NCBI GenBank assembly: GCA_038496445.1
Contig: JALMLS010000022.1
Span: 67,594 to 131,593 of the forward strand
Reading direction: 5' to 3'
DNA length: 64,000 nucleotides
Source of the DNA: Trichosphaerium sp. ATCC 40318
Lineage: Eukaryota > Protista > Tubulinea
Numbering within the stretch: the first letter of the stretch is position 1; each line of letters opens with the position of its first letter. Made by a program: the position numbers and the translations under genes. A model generated the notes under the pieces. The model saw only the letters and a program-made list of their open reading frames with translations. It was not told where the DNA came from and ran no database searches. Positions 54,331-63,199 of this stretch are shown one piece after another.

Positions 54331-56615
54331 ATGACAACAAAAGCATCTGCCGATCAAATCATGTACGTCACCTCCAAGCTTGCATATCCACTAGCTCCCT
54401 GAGCGTAAAAAGGAGAAATGTCATCCTAACAAAAATAACGAACTAACATTTAGACGCAATACTTACGCATAAATAGTGTCTCTATCAAAAACGAGCAGCT
54501 CACTGCATTTTTAAAGGATGAAGACTTGAAGGCTCTACTAGGCGCGATTGAGAACAAAGACGTCAAGAAAGGAACTGTGCTCATCAAGCAAGGTGCGTAA
54601 CAACCCTCTTTGGCGCATTATTCGCTATTTGGGTTTTCGTTCCCACTTTTCTCAAGAAACGAGCTAGGTGAACCACAAACAGCTTGTTTCTTCGTATTGG
54701 CTGGTGAATTGCACAAGACATTACAAGAGACTGAGGAAGGTAGTCACACTGTTTTGAAGACTGGTGAGGTTACCGGGCTCTTGCACTTTTACGCCAACGA
54801 TCCTGCACACGCTACGGTTACAGTACGTGCTCGTACAACGTAATACCGGAATAACTTTTATCAAGGTAGCTGTAGACTCCAAAATAGGCGTCCTTACGCG
54901 TGAAAACTTCCAAAAGCTCCTTGCTAGCCGTCCATCCTTGAACCAAAGCTTTATTCAATTCTTATCAAAACAAGTCCGCGAGTCTCTTAATCACGTGAAA
55001 GCGCTCAAGGTATGTACATTCTTACACTTAGCAATTAGCAACAAACTTGATTTTATTTTCTGTACTTATGATGTGGATGTGAATCATCATGACAGATGGG
55101 AATTTTATGAAAAATATTGTTTTTGATTGGTTTTTTTTCTTGATCGTGCAATATTAATTGTTCGTTTAGGAGATTGTAACTGGAAAGGCCGCTGGTCTTC
55201 CTGTCGCATTTTTTGATGCCAAGTCGTACATGAGAGAAGCCTTTGAGAGCGAAATGAAGAGCAAGGGATACACATTTTCCATCACGTGGTATGCTGACAG
55301 ACTTACCTCTGAAACTGCGCACATGGCAGCGGGCCATAAGGTACATTAGTGAAATGCGCTAGAATTACCTCTCACTGGTAAATATTAGGTCGTTTGTTGT
55401 TTCGTGTCTGATATTGTTGATGAAGATGCCATCAACCAACTCGGTGCTGTTGGTGTTGAAATGATTGCTATGAGATGTGCTGGATACGACAACGTTGTAT
55501 TGAAGGCATGTGCTGCCAACAACATTAGGCGCGTGTTATCTTCATATGACGTAACGCTGATTTTTAACATTCTTTGAAGTGTAACACGTGTTCCTGCATA
55601 TTCTCCTTATGCTGTAGCTGAGTTTGCATTGTTATTGATGCTCTCCTTGAACCGCAAAATCGTTACTGCATCAAACCGCGTCAGCGCATTGAACTTTTCA
55701 TTGGACGGACTTGTAGGCTTTGACATGAGGTACGACAAACACCCTTTTTTTTCGAACTACAGGTTTGTCTTACTTGCGCTGTTTAGAGGTAAAACCGTTG
55801 GTATTATCGGCACAGGAAAAATCGGATGCATCACTGCCCAGGTACACATTATTTTCCAACGCAACGCACTCATTTGTGTAGATTTGTCTTGGTCTTGGAT
55901 GCAAAATTTTGTGCTTTGACATTTACCAAAACAAAGAGTTACTCGCTAATCCAAGTACGTCACAGTGCAAAGTAGCAGTTTAGTAACAGGTTGTTCTTTG
56001 TAGATGTAAAATACGTATCAAAGGAAGAGCTCTTCAAAAACTCTCACATCATCTCCCTCCATGCTCCTCTACTTAAAGCCACACACCACACGTACTACTG
56101 AAGATTGTTTTTAATTCTGTTGTTGTACTAATTCCTGTGTGAAACTAGTATCAACAAGGAAGCTCTCGATATGATGAAGCCTGGTGTTATAATTATCAAT
56201 ACTTCTAGAGGACCTCTCATCGATACAGAAGCTCTTCTAGCAGCTGTGTTGAGCGGCAAGGTCGGTGGAGCAGGTATGTGCACTTCTTTTAAACAAACAA
56301 CAACTTAGTTTGCAAATTCAAGGTTTGGACGTTGTTGAAGGTGAAAAAGGATTCTTCTACGAGGATATGTCTAACGCACCTGGTATCCAACATAACGCAC
56401 TATCTCAGCTCATCACATGTACCAATGTTATTGTTACATCCCATCAAGTACGCGTATAGTTTTTACTAACATTTGTACTCAACTTTCCTGCCTAGGCTTT
56501 CTTGTCTCGTGAGGCACTCTCTAATATCTCTGAGTCTACTTTGGGCAGCATTAAAGAATATGAAGAAGGTAAGAGAGGAGCTGAGCTCACCAACTTTGTA
56601 AAACAAGAGTACTAA
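54331..56615 (+). CDS. cNMP-binding (CRP-like) domain fused to D-lactate / D-2-hydroxyacid dehydrogenase
   Basis: N-terminal KKGTVLIKQGEPQTACFFVLAGEL...GEVTG...ATV..ENFQKLL. C-terminal LdhA-type motifs MRCAGYDNV, RVPAYSPYAVAE, GLVGFDM, GIIGTGKIG, SLHAPL, INTSRG, GLDVVEGE and VTSHQAFL. All exons join in frame. Confidence 0.93.
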
Positions 56616-57369: not shown

Positions 57370-59794
57370 GATTGGTTGTGTTGCTTCTACGTATTAGGTA
57401 CTGTATAAATGAATAAACAAGAAGTTTGTGCAGCACAAAAGAAACTCAGGAAAACAAAAAAAGTGTTTATTGTTCACTGATCGTCAGAAAAGCAAATAAC
57501 AGGCCTCAAAACAAACGCCAGTTCTCTTCGGTTCTCGAATATAAGGTTTAGACGCTAATTGTTTTTGTACAAATGAGTTCAAAGTCGCAGTGCATACTTA
57601 GCCCACCAACAAAATCCAAATAACGCTGAAACTAATCGAAAATTTGCGTTGTACCACTTTGTAGGTCTGAATGCAGCACTTCTAAAACTTAACAGCTTTA
57701 TGCGTTTTATTCGTGGAGCTTAGGGTGTTTTCCAAAAATAAGCTATTGCAGTTTTTCTTCGCTCATTGCTAGCATAAAGCAAGCGCATTGTAATTTTGGA
57801 CTGTCAGTGAACAACCGCTTGTTTCCGGTGGCAATTATCAAACAAGAACAGTTTCGCCAAACAGTGCTTTGCCTAAAATACCAAAACGTGTACAATGGGC
57901 ACCACACTGGACCTAACCAAAGAGGAACACAGAGAAAAAAAAAAAAACGACCCATTGACTTTTACCCATTATTTTTTTTTAGGAGAGATTAAAAACGCAA
58001 CGCTATCATCAGCATGAATTCTGGTGGTCAGCGCAAACGAAAACGCACCACTACGGTGAGTCATGCTTGTGCAGCATGTAGAAGCAAGCATTTGAAATGC
58101 GATGGAAACCACCCTACTTGTGGTCGTTGTGCTCAAAAGGGTATAAGCTGTGATTGGACAAGAAAACGAAGGAAACGAGGGCCAGTTGCGGGTAAATTAC
58201 TTTTCGATCCACTAGAAGTGTTCACAGTGCTGTATATTATATATTATATATGTATATGGCGTGACAAAACGCTCCTGGGATTATCGTTATCAAGTTTTGC
58301 CGATGTACTAATTACTGACCACCCATATTATTAGGTAAAGCAGCGAAGCTTGAAACCGAAGTAGAAAGCCTGCACAATGAAATTAAGAGAAACGCCAACG
58401 AAGCGGCTCACTGGAAACACTTATATGAAGCTATTAAGCGTGGAACGCATTCTAAATCATCCAACAAACCCAAAAAGGTATAACATCGAATCTCTTTTTT
58501 TTTTTTGCAAACAAAAAACTCCAAAACACGGGCGAATTCATATTTTCTTTTCTGTACCGTTGATGACTGCGAGTAACGGAATTTTGTGTATTTTTTGAAA
58601 GTTGAGGTTTGTTTTTTTGACCTTTATTGTTTGTTTTTCCTTTTTGTTTTGGCCGCTTTTAATCATTAGTCCGCTTCTTTTTTGTGTTACTATGCTCACT
58701 CGCCTTTCCAGGCCAAGCAACTGCAATCTCAAGAGCTTGACATTTCTACTTTAACAACTACAGTGTACGCGCAATTCGCGCAAGTATACTTGAACCACGT
58801 AAATCCTATCCTTGGTCTAGATGTCAGCGCATACCTTGAACCTGCCAACATAAGCAAGATGCTCACAGACGAAACTAAGGCTTCTTCGCCCGCCATGCTC
58901 GTTTTATATGGTGTATTGGCAGTCGGAGCACAAAGGAGAGCAGGAAACGCGGACTTAGCGTTCACTTTGGCTGGAAAATGCAGACTTTTACTATGCGACT
59001 TTTTTGACCTCAACCATCCAGAAGTTGCAAGTACGTTATTTTTTTTGCGGTAGATTTACGCTTTGGAAGGATCCAATACTTTTTACGAAGGTCTTCTTTT
59101 TTTAGCAATAAAAGTGGAGAAATTCTTGCCAGAAAAAACAAAAAAAAAAACAATTTACCGAAACGGAGAAATTTATTAATTTCTCTGTTACTGATTGTCT
59201 AACTCGTTTCTCTTTTAGCTGGCCTTTGTCTATTGTCCCAGTACCATCAAACTGCTGGAGAAGCTACTAAAGCGGTTTATTACTACTCGATGGCGGTAAA
59301 TATGTGCAAGAATCTTCTTAAAAATAACGTTCAAAACGTACCAGATAGCGAAGCTGTACGTTAATTATTGCCTTACTTGTAATATTTAGAACCTTTTTCT
59401 TTGTTTTAGAAGGGAGAAATTAACGACATCTTTTTTTTTTTTTTTTTTGGTGACAAACTTTTACGTGCTGGTTCAACGCACTCTAATTGAGTCAACTATT
59501 ACATTCTGCAGTAGTTCCATATTTTTTTTTGCCCTTTTCAGTGTTTTTCCTTTTCTACGTGGAATTGTACCGCAACTAATGCTTATTGTAGTTGGGTGAC
59601 GTATACCGTGTATGCACATTGTCTCTAGGTGAACACGCAGAAACTAGGTGCGCTTGTCTACTAAAACAATCGAAATTTGATTTTTCTGATTATATTGTAG
59701 AAAGGAGGCACTCGATACTTTCAGCGATCTTGCTTGCTGGTTGCAAGAGAACTTTATGGTTAATGGTAACTTTGAGGAGACCACAATTACACTT
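57213..59794 (+). repeat. Left arm of >=2.58 kb inverted duplication
   Basis: Near-identical reverse complement of 61417-64000; mirrored ORFs in the track. Confidence 0.95.
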
Positions 59795-61353: not shown

Positions 61354-63199
61354 TTAATTTAGTAGTGCTAATATAATTACAGTACAAACAACTGTAGTGT
61401 AAATTCCTAAAAAAGCAAGTGTAATAGTGGTCTCCTCAAAGTTACCATTAACCATAAAGTTCTCTTGCAACCAGCAAGCAAGATCGCTGAAAGTATCGAG
61501 TGCCTCCTTTCTACAATATAATCAGAAAAATCAAATTTCGATTGTTTTTGTAGACAAGCGCACCTAGTTTCTGCGTGTTCACCTAGAGACAATGTGCATA
61601 CACGGTATACGTCACCCAACTACAATAAGCATTAGTTGCGGTACAATTCCACGTTAGAAAAGGAAAAACACTGAAAAGGGCAAAAAAAAATATGGAACTA
61701 CTGCAGAATGTAATAGTTGACTCAATTAGAGTGCGTTGAACCAGCACGTAAAAGTTTGTCACCAAAAAAAAAAAAAAAAAAAAGATGTCGTTAATTTCTC
61801 CCTTCTAAAACAAAGAAAAAGGTTCTAAATATTACAAGTAAGGCAATAATTAACGTACAGCTTCGCTATCTGGTACGTTTTGAACGTTATTTTAAGAAGA
61901 TTCTTGCACATATTTACCGCCATCGAGTAGTAATAAACCGCTTTAGTAGCTTCTCCAGCAGTTTGATGGTACTGGGACAATAGACAAAGGCCAGCTAAAA
62001 GAGAAACGAGTTTAGACAATCAGTAACAGAGAAATTAATAAATTTTCTCCGTTTCGGTAAATTGTTTTTTTTTTTGTTTTTTCTGGCAAGAATTTCTCCA
62101 CTTTTATTGCTAAAAAAAGAAGACCTTCGTAAAAGTATTGGATCCTTCCAAAGCGTAAATCTACCGCAAAAAAAATAACGTACTTGCAACTTCTGGATGG
62201 TTGAGGTCAAAAAAGTCGATAGTAAAAGTCTGCATTTTCCAGCCAAAGTGAACGCTAAGTCCGCGTTTCCTGCTCTCCTTTGTGCTCCGACTGCCAATAC
62301 ACCATATAAAACGAGCATGGCGGGCGAAGAAGCCTTAGTTTCGTCTGTGAGCATCTTGCTTATGTTGGCAGGTTCAAGGTATGCGCTGACATCTAGACCA
62401 AGGATAGGATTTACGTGGTTCAAGTATACTTGCGCGAATTGCGCGTACACTGTAGTTGTTAAAGTAGAAATGTCAAGCTCTTGAGATTGCAGTTGCTTGG
62501 CCTGGAAAGGCGAGTGAGCATAGTAACACAAAAAAGAAGCGGACTAATGATTAAAAGCGGCCAAAACAAAAAGGAAAAACAAACAATAAAGGTCAAAAAA
62601 ACAAACCTCAACTTTCAAAAAATACACAAAATTCCGTTACTCGCAGTCATCAACGGTACAGAAAAGAAAATATGAATTCGCCCGTGTTTTGGAGTTTTTT
62701 GTTTGCAAAAAAAAAAAAGAGATTCGATGTTATACCTTTTTGGGTTTGTTGGATGATTTAGAATGCGTTCCACGCTTAATAGCTTCATATAAGTGTTTCC
62801 AGTGAGCCGCTTCGTTGGCGTTTCTCTTAATTTCATTGTGCAGGCTTTCTACTTCGGTTTCAAGCTTCGCTGCTTTACCTAATAATATGGGTGGTCAGTA
62901 ATTAGTACATCGGCAAAACTTGATAACGATAATCCCAGGAGCGTTTTGTCACGCCATATACATATATAATATATAATATACAGCACTGTGAACACTTCTA
63001 GTGGATCGAAAAGTAATTTACCCGCAACTGGCCCTCGTTTCCTTCGTTTTCTTGTCCAATCACAGCTTATACCCTTTTGAGCACAACGACCACAAGTAGG
63101 GTGGTTTCCATCGCATTTCAAATGCTTGCTTCTACATGCTGCACAAGCATGACTCACCGTAGTGGTGCGTTTTCGTTTGCGCTGACCACCAGAATTCAT
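61354..63199 (-). pseudogene. 3'-truncated, frameshifted second copy of the Zn2Cys6 gene
   Basis: Identical Zn-cluster exon; 1-nt deletions at about 62220 and 61890; homology ends at 61417. Confidence 0.7.

Follow-up and report, generated by a model that had tools for sequence, protein, structure and literature searches.

Are a sensor domain of the cyclic nucleotide-binding (CNB) fold and a fermentative D-lactate dehydrogenase (D-LDH) joined in a single protein of the amoeba Trichosphaerium sp. ATCC 40318 and, if they are, to what kind of signal might such a sensor respond? The question is raised by a gene, hereafter CNB-D-LDH, located in a stretch of 64,000 nucleotides of contig JALMLS010000022.1 (positions 67,594 to 131,593 of the forward strand), which we call the window and whose numbering we use throughout. 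The gene (54331-56615, + strand) comprises 13 exons, the 1,494 coding nucleotides of which form 497 codons plus a stop in one frame, as checked by script. Exons 2-4 (54477..55009, introns 2 and 3 included) encode the CNB-homology domain, with its N-terminal helices, beta-roll, phosphate-binding cassette, helix alphaB, and most of helix alphaC, and exons 5-13 (55170..56615, introns 5-12 included) encode an LdhA-type D-LDH. We compared the window exons one by one, and carried out whole-chain searches and folding on natural relatives, mainly the protein P0011. This 494-residue protein from the transcriptome of Nematostelium gracile, retrieved via cluster look-up, contains cNMP_binding, 2-Hacid_dh, and 2-Hacid_dh_C (173 bits) domains.

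Pending RNA, sequence comparison and structure prediction indicate that the CNB-LDH fusion is very probably real. The domain junction (55009 to 55170, exons 4 and 5) lies in the region encoding the predicted long alphaC helix and linker (54935..55184), which reads SLNQSFIQFLSKQVRESLNHVKALK followed by EIVTG and spans intron 4 (55010-55169). The KALK-EIVTG joint is exactly the one proposed in the preliminary description of this locus, and the gene can be read as a single spliced unit in which the phases close and to which the relatives are collinear. When mapped onto the window by tblastn, P0011 is collinear with exons 2-13 over residues 15-493 of its 494, and two further relatives, P0003 and P0004, likewise align collinearly with the window exons, including exons 2-4. 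Added as separate fragments to the alignment of the clade, exons 2-5 fit it column for column and leave no gap at the junction. The AlphaFold2 model of P0011, built on a 75-sequence alignment (mean predicted local distance difference test score, pLDDT, of 93; predicted template modeling score, pTM, of 0.76), places a beta-roll at residues 38-111 (pLDDT >90), helix B at 112-121, a single long helix C at 123-152, which stops four residues before the next element, and the first strand of the dehydrogenase at 157-161. In the alignment to this model, the exon 4/exon 5 junction of the Trichosphaerium gene maps within helix C. The rival explanation would be that there are two genes, or that the dehydrogenase is chiefly expressed from an internal promoter, the CNB and LDH exons giving separate products and the joint being a modeling artefact. 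It could draw on the length of intron 4 (160 nt, the longest of the gene) and on a short open exon, the only one within it that could splice in frame to exon 5 (55089-55118, MTDGNFMKNI), but splicing of that exon would require the donor GTTTTT, which resembles none of the 12 donors that the gene uses. Moreover, an in-frame TAG (55167-55169) immediately abuts the 5' side of exon 5, the first Met of exon 5 comes downstream of strand 1 of the dehydrogenase, and the amoebozoan, fungal, ichthyosporean, and bacterial relatives carry both halves on one chain with equal spacing. Since the relatives are collinear, the alignment is gapless, the stop and the Met are so placed, the alternative donor is atypical, and the junction falls inside one predicted helix, we take the fusion as real and consider separate products very improbable.

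The exon model was derived by reading the window between 53800 and 57200, and places the exons, all on the + strand, at 54331-54362, 54477-54592, 54668-54822, 54866-55009, 55170-55340, 55389-55528, 55580-55729, 55787-55841, 55882-55954, 56004-56091, 56149-56273, 56323-56447, and 56496-56615, the last one ending with the stop codon TAA (56613-56615). The 12 introns are 40-160 nt long, and the exons have a GC content of 43.7% vs 36.3% for the introns. Exon 1 (54331..54362) provides the start codon and the first 10 codons (MTTKASADQI) plus two bases of a split codon, and has the donor GTACGT. Such an upstream start exon is needed because exon 2 has no Met and is preceded by an in-frame TAG at 54451; the resulting start position relative to the first helix resembles that of the relatives in the clade alignment. 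Eleven introns are of the GT-AG type and one, intron 6 (55529..55579), is GC-AG, with the donor GCGCGT. At the joint of exons 6 and 7, P0011, P0003, and P0004 all have S(I/V)TRVPAYSP in the tblastn alignment to the window, and we chose the GC donor because it alone yields this sequence, the codon split as AG and T giving Ser. We rejected the alternative GT donor at 55535, which would add two residues that are absent from the relatives. A published draft genome of Trichosphaerium (70.87 Mb, 37.69% GC) has a mean intron length of 75 bp and ~8.7 introns per gene (PMC10521059). The assembly used here (70.3 Mb in 642 contigs) agrees with these figures in the GC content of the window (37.3%) and in the 12 short introns of CNB-D-LDH.

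What kind of domain, then, precedes the dehydrogenase? The relatives to which the window exons align column by column match Pfam cNMP_binding (PF00027) with 60.3 (P0003), 53.1 (P0011, residues 40-122), and 31.9 bits (P0004), and the window exons align to the eight-stranded beta-roll and the subsequent B and C helices of the P0011 model. A search of solved structures with exon 3 alone gave no match. With the N-domain of P0011, the best solved relatives were the yeast protein kinase A regulatory subunit (PKA-R) Bcy1 (3of1, E 2e-16) and Plasmodium PKG (5ezr/4rz7, E 5e-16). The solved structures of the CRP family are weak matches to the same domain (E 3.8e-4 to 9e-3), and no helix-turn-helix DNA-binding domain follows the CNB domain, its C-helix leading into the dehydrogenase instead. 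The domain had been described as “cNMP/CRP-type”, a label of which the homology to the CNB fold stands, whereas the CRP part is ruled out by these three observations in favor of a PKA-R/PKG-like domain. The phosphate-binding cassette, GEVTGLLHFYANDPAHATV (54763..54819, + strand), was located through the ungapped alignment between P0011 and PKA-R together with the family alignments. In canonical cassettes, the Glu contacts the ribose 2'-OH and the Arg contacts the cyclic phosphate. The ungapped alignment equates canonical G-E-L-A-L...P-R-A-A-T-V with G-L-L-H-F...D-P-A-H-A-T-V in exon 3, which puts Leu (54778-54780) at the position of the Glu and Ala (54805-54807) at that of the Arg. The cassette is thus degenerate and devoid of both residues, as had been proposed initially. 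The His (54784-54786) and the Asp-Pro pair (54799-54804) found in it are conserved and specific to the clade. As far as its sequence tells, the Trichosphaerium protein is a CNB-fold homologue that should not be classed as a cyclic-nucleotide binder.

The dehydrogenase half is complete and of the LdhA type, again in agreement with the preliminary description, both Pfam domains, the GxGxxG motif, the cofactor-selecting Asp, and the catalytic Arg-Glu-His being present. Among the individual exons, exon 6 matches 2-Hacid_dh (PF00389, 32.1 bits) and exons 10 and 11 match 2-Hacid_dh_C (PF02826, 21.7 and 48.3 bits, respectively), exon 11 also being recovered by a six-frame PF02826 scan of the genome. 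Searched alone, exon 5 weakly matches the Fusobacterium nucleatum D-LDH (5z21) in an alignment that begins at residue 11 of the exon, opposite the first strand of the enzyme, so that the first ten residues of the exon can be considered as linker. According to the family alignment, the NAD-binding motif is GTGKIG (55809..55826), the NAD-ribose Asp, the acidic residue that selects NAD(H), lies at 55918-55920, and the catalytic triad consists of Arg 56207-56209, Glu 56343-56345, and His 56442-56444 (all + strand), which occupy the invariant alignment columns R392, E421, and H453. The window exons are identical to the family at 78 of the 85 columns conserved at ≥90%, cofactor and catalytic residues included. 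The dehydrogenase half of P0011 matches the solved D-LDHs of F. nucleatum (316 bits), P. aeruginosa (313 bits), and E. coli (LdhA, 303-304 bits); its ten best solved matches are all of the D-LDH type (280-316 bits), with HicDH, GRHPR, and PHGDH at 170 bits or less. No NCBIfam model, equivalogs included, reaches its cut-off. The putative activity of the enzyme half is that on pyruvate and D-lactate. Exon-wise scans of the genome, the counts of which are lower bounds, found neither a second LdhA-type locus nor, using the P0011 N-domain, a second copy of the N-domain.

Is the fusion peculiar to this amoeba? In an exhaustive search, exon 5 matched protein fragments with additional sequence ahead of the dehydrogenase start, two of which, P0003 and P0004, contain cNMP_binding, above cut-off, followed by 2-Hacid_dh on a single chain. 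P0001, the top match of exon 5 in a search of representative sequences, is a repetitive and unrelated protein and was discarded. While a word-indexed search with the P0003 N-domain gave two proteins, the full-length P0011 query revealed the family, namely dozens of proteins of ~480-515 residues combining PF00027, PF00389, and PF02826; the N-domain is present in 73 of the 130 proteins that we collected. Eukaryotic members occur in Amoebozoa (Nematostelium, Soliformovum, and Flabellula), ichthyosporeans (Sphaeroforma and Creolimax), chytrids (Boothiomyces, Rhizophlyctis, Globomyces, Terramyces, and Physocladia), and Rozella. Some family members come from transcript assemblies, and one from a short, mRNA-like Logan contig. 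In bacteria, the members are single open reading frames (ORFs) on dense contigs, with neighbors of typical bacterial families. At least 27 single-frame loci with both halves were found in prokaryotic species-representative genomes. Among the matches listed, these loci are labeled as coming from Planctomycetota, Verrucomicrobiota, Omnitrophota, many Myxococcota/Polyangia, Leptospirales, Spirochaetales, Lentisphaeria, Gemmatimonadota, Desulfobulbaceae, the cultured Mycobacterium attenuatum MK41, and one Thorarchaeota metagenome-assembled genome (MAG). The dehydrogenase is complete (330-412 bits) in 26 of the 27 loci listed, the remaining one, from Thorarchaeota, ending at a contig edge. This partial gene (Candidatus Thorarchaeota contig JBHLRC010000156.1) has an Arg in its cassette and owes its Asgard label to binning, which may be in error. 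The ESM Atlas contains two clusters with the CNB-D-LDH architecture (111 and 74 members), whose commonest labeled phyla are Bacillariophyta and Myxococcota. Database names are generic (“D-lactate dehydrogenase family protein” or “Cyclic nucleotide-binding domain-containing protein”). In view of these eukaryotic and prokaryotic members, we rejected the idea that the fusion was invented in the Trichosphaerium lineage alone, and the novelty that had been implied for the architecture is much reduced since it belongs to a widespread family that databases have annotated automatically.

The family members differ in their cassettes. The Arg (R-S/T-A) is kept in all 27 prokaryotic loci listed, about five of which also keep the Glu, and the database proteins likewise comprise a group with both residues, including proteins from Chloroflexota MAGs, and a group with the Arg only. 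In the opisthokont group, a His often occupies the Arg position. By contrast, both Glu and Arg are gone in every labeled amoebozoan relative, a group to which Trichosphaerium belongs and that we call LH-type after its signature EGxPQ ... G-x-L-H-[FLI] ... D-P-x-x-A-T ... LSKxxR; the corresponding Trichosphaerium sites read KQGEPQ, GLLHF, DPAHAT, and LSKQVR. The LH...DP..AT signature occurs in 28 of the collected sequences, and the best exon-wise matches to the window gene, P0016-P0019, belong to this amoebozoan clade. A quick maximum-likelihood tree built from 116 LDH domains divides the fused proteins into three groups, which match the cassette types and are all separated from a cluster of plain bacterial LdhA proteins of ~330 residues (Shimodaira-Hasegawa-like approximate likelihood ratio test, SH-aLRT, 97). 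Because this tree is unrooted and its sample biased toward fused proteins, we make no claim about a single origin or about the direction of any transfer. The N-terminal part of the LH clade is 146-168 residues long, and its mean pairwise identity is 32.7% vs 55.9% for the dehydrogenase half, that is, a ratio of 0.59, compared with 0.68 and 0.61 in the Arg-keeping clades and 0.44 in the opisthokont group. Short of proving ligand binding, this pattern of constraint argues that the former ligand site still has a function and has not simply decayed.

Several side observations concern individual fusion proteins. A fused CNB-D-LDH is found in a record labeled as the beetle Zophobas morio (P0042, XP_063901676.1, on a 241-kb contig), which groups with Sphaeroforma and Creolimax in the LDH tree (SH-aLRT 92, unstarred) and could be due to gut-protist contamination or to transfer. 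An identical 493-residue fused protein, P0016, is encoded on two JGI contigs (L002 and L003) whose upstream genes differ, being a leishmanolysin-type peptidase in one case and an ATP-sulfurylase/APS-kinase in the other. Both contigs are intron-free and tightly packed, and could be chimeric transcript assemblies or derive from an intron-poor eukaryote. LdhA-type D-LDHs are also fused to other N-terminal domains, as in P0013/P0014 of Amphidinium massartii (820-823 residues), P0020 (677 residues), and P0087 (558 residues); the domains seen in this position are a GFO_IDH_MocA-type oxidoreductase domain in a dinoflagellate protein and an F_bP_aldolase domain in a metagenomic one.

How could the two halves work together? 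In CNB-regulated proteins such as PKA, Epac, and Pat, the ligand at the cassette shifts the B and C helices. In the fusion, the C-helix would be a direct, almost linker-free tie from the N-domain to the substrate-binding domain of the dehydrogenase, an enzyme of a type whose activity depends on domain closure and quaternary state. We propose that the N-domain may gate the reduction of pyruvate to D-lactate allosterically through this helix. Since they keep the cassette Arg, sometimes together with the Glu, the prokaryotic members probably have cAMP or cGMP as gating ligand. In the amoebozoan clade, the replaced cassette (G-x-L-H-[FLI]...D-P-x-x-A-T) would respond to another ligand or signal, or to none. 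A regulatory role of the amoebozoan N-domain on the dehydrogenase, exerted by a signal other than cAMP or cGMP, is the reading that we favor with some reserve; that regulation exists, the way in which it acts, and the kind of ligand are what we infer from the sequences. The preliminary description had already judged a classical cyclic nucleotide to be an improbable ligand, and the distribution of the cassette residues, absent from all labeled amoebozoans and with the Arg present in each of the listed prokaryotic loci, bears this out. A number of points weigh against our reading. Exon 3 alone, as a single-exon query, scores 19.7 bits against PF00027, below the 27.5 cut-off, and a six-frame PF00027 scan of the genome (E ≤ 0.001) did not recover the CNB-D-LDH locus, which implies that the sensor domain is divergent. 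The rigid helical link seen in the P0011 model is suggestive, as the AlphaFold2 output came without inter-domain error estimates. The partial Flabellula sequence P0029 does not have the His of the clade, and we found no published binding or kinetic data for any CNB-D-LDH member in the open-access literature. Finally, the loss of both cassette residues is equally expected of a structural domain blind to ligands.

This last point leads to a different explanation, in which the amoebozoan N-domain would be a ligand-blind relic or a structural module, serving for oligomerization, constitutive autoinhibition, localization, or partner binding, with no small-molecule gating. The residues for the cyclic phosphate and for the ribose have indeed both disappeared and the N-domain evolves faster than the enzyme to which it is attached. 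However, the length of the domain and the LH...DP..AT motif at the old ligand site are conserved across the amoebozoan-type clade, three labeled genera included, and the relative conservation of the domain comes close to the values of the Arg-keeping clades, all of which makes this explanation rather unlikely in our opinion. Alternatively, the N-domain might have retained a non-canonical mode of cAMP or cGMP binding, the enzyme being a classical second-messenger target. The CNB fold and its structural glycines are retained, the nearest solved relatives are genuine cAMP/cGMP binders, the prokaryotic family members keep the Arg, and the PF00027 scan detected other CNB domains in the Trichosphaerium genome; yet the Glu and the Arg have been replaced by Leu and Ala, and both positions are non-canonical throughout the amoebozoan-type clade. 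The exon-wise scan also yielded three identical weak matches to class III cyclases (PF00211), a lower bound and too sparse to argue either way. They are located at C338:14387-14638, C83:4334-4585, and C250:57477-57728, each being partial, with 32 bits and an internal stop, and seem to represent a single fragment that has been repeated. On balance, we hold non-canonical cyclic nucleotide binding to be improbable. Returning to regulation by another signal, a more specific version can be put forward tentatively, as a possibility about which we remain doubtful: Amoebozoa and, separately, chytrids and ichthyosporeans may have re-tuned an ancestral cyclic-nucleotide-gated D-LDH to a different signal that directly switches fermentative NADH recycling. 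The pocket would then be lined by the conserved His and Asp-Pro, the candidates for the signal being a pyruvate-node metabolite, a nucleoside, and cues of the redox or haem type, and NADH recycling would be switched without any intervening kinase or transcription factor. If this were true, the prokaryotic members would be the first second-messenger-gated lactate dehydrogenases.

Comparison with known systems helps to define what is unusual in this protein. The C-terminal ~340 residues of the fusion share fold and family with the LdhA-type D-LDHs of F. nucleatum (5z21), P. aeruginosa (5z20), and E. coli (3wx0/5z1z), which are allosteric tetramers. These enzymes stand alone, with ~330 residues, whereas the Trichosphaerium protein adds a CNB-type domain of ~150-155 residues connected to strand 1 by a long helix. 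That domain corresponds in beta-roll, cassette position, and B and C helices to the PKA-R and PKG domains of Bcy1 and Plasmodium PKG. In contrast with them, the fusion has replaced the Glu and the Arg, possesses one CNB domain instead of a tandem, and attaches it to a metabolic enzyme with no kinase to regulate. The solved relatives of the P0011 N-domain also include trypanosomatid PKA regulatory subunits (6ftf and relatives), in which the CNB domains no longer possess the cassette Arg, retain the ribose-binding Glu, and bind nucleosides instead of cAMP. By analogy, they provide a precedent for re-tuned ligand specificity in CNB domains, although nothing here points to nucleosides, the trypanosomatid proteins regulate a kinase, and the Trichosphaerium fusion has lost the Glu as well.

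CNB domains or other sensors attached directly to enzymes offer further parallels. In the mycobacterial cAMP-regulated lysine acetyltransferase Pat (4ava, 4orf), an N-terminal CNB domain, a sequence relative of the N-domain studied here, is fused to the enzyme as an allosteric switch, but the effector is a GNAT acetyltransferase and the cassette is canonical and binds cAMP. D-3-phosphoglycerate dehydrogenase with ACT/ASB domains (1ygy, 3ddn) belongs to the same 2-hydroxyacid dehydrogenase superfamily as the fusion and has an appended regulatory domain that binds a small molecule; this domain is C-terminal, of the ACT type, and serine-binding, unlike the N-terminal CNB domain of the fusion. Bact_Pyrredox places CNB domains on a pyridine-nucleotide-disulphide oxidoreductase, likewise a redox enzyme using a nicotinamide cofactor, but with tandem CNB domains, another oxidoreductase fold, a canonical cassette, and a distribution restricted to prokaryotes (PMC2246266). 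The same survey, covering 30 CNB families, includes no fusion to a lactate or 2-hydroxyacid dehydrogenase (Kannan et al. 2007, PMC2246266). We found neither a description of the CNB-D-LDH architecture in the open-access literature nor a curated family model for it, and solved-structure searches with P0011 found no chain combining the two halves. The Trichosphaerium gene is therefore an additional member of a catalogued but apparently uncharacterized family, and this family is a new sensor-effector pairing among CNB-regulated enzymes.

Outside CNB-D-LDH, two ORFs of the window, at 58682-59053 (+ strand) and 61995-62531 (- strand), have a common N-terminal peptide of ~100 residues (MCYYAHSPFQAKQLQSQELDISTL...), which suggests that part of a gene has been duplicated in inverted orientation, with the copies ~3 kb apart.

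The value of the finding is that it points to a sizeable family, for which we found no published study, and not to a curiosity of one window. Sensor-enzyme fusions are the simplest signaling circuits, and a CNB sensor placed on an NAD+-regenerating pyruvate enzyme would, if confirmed, mean that a small-molecule signal controls the flux through fermentation at the post-translational level. The family also represents a natural experiment in which canonical or Arg-only prokaryotic cassettes can be set against the rewritten eukaryotic ones on one and the same enzyme scaffold. In Trichosphaerium itself, regulation of CNB-D-LDH would matter for the way in which the amoeba deals with low oxygen, since this appears to be the only LdhA-type D-LDH found in its genome.

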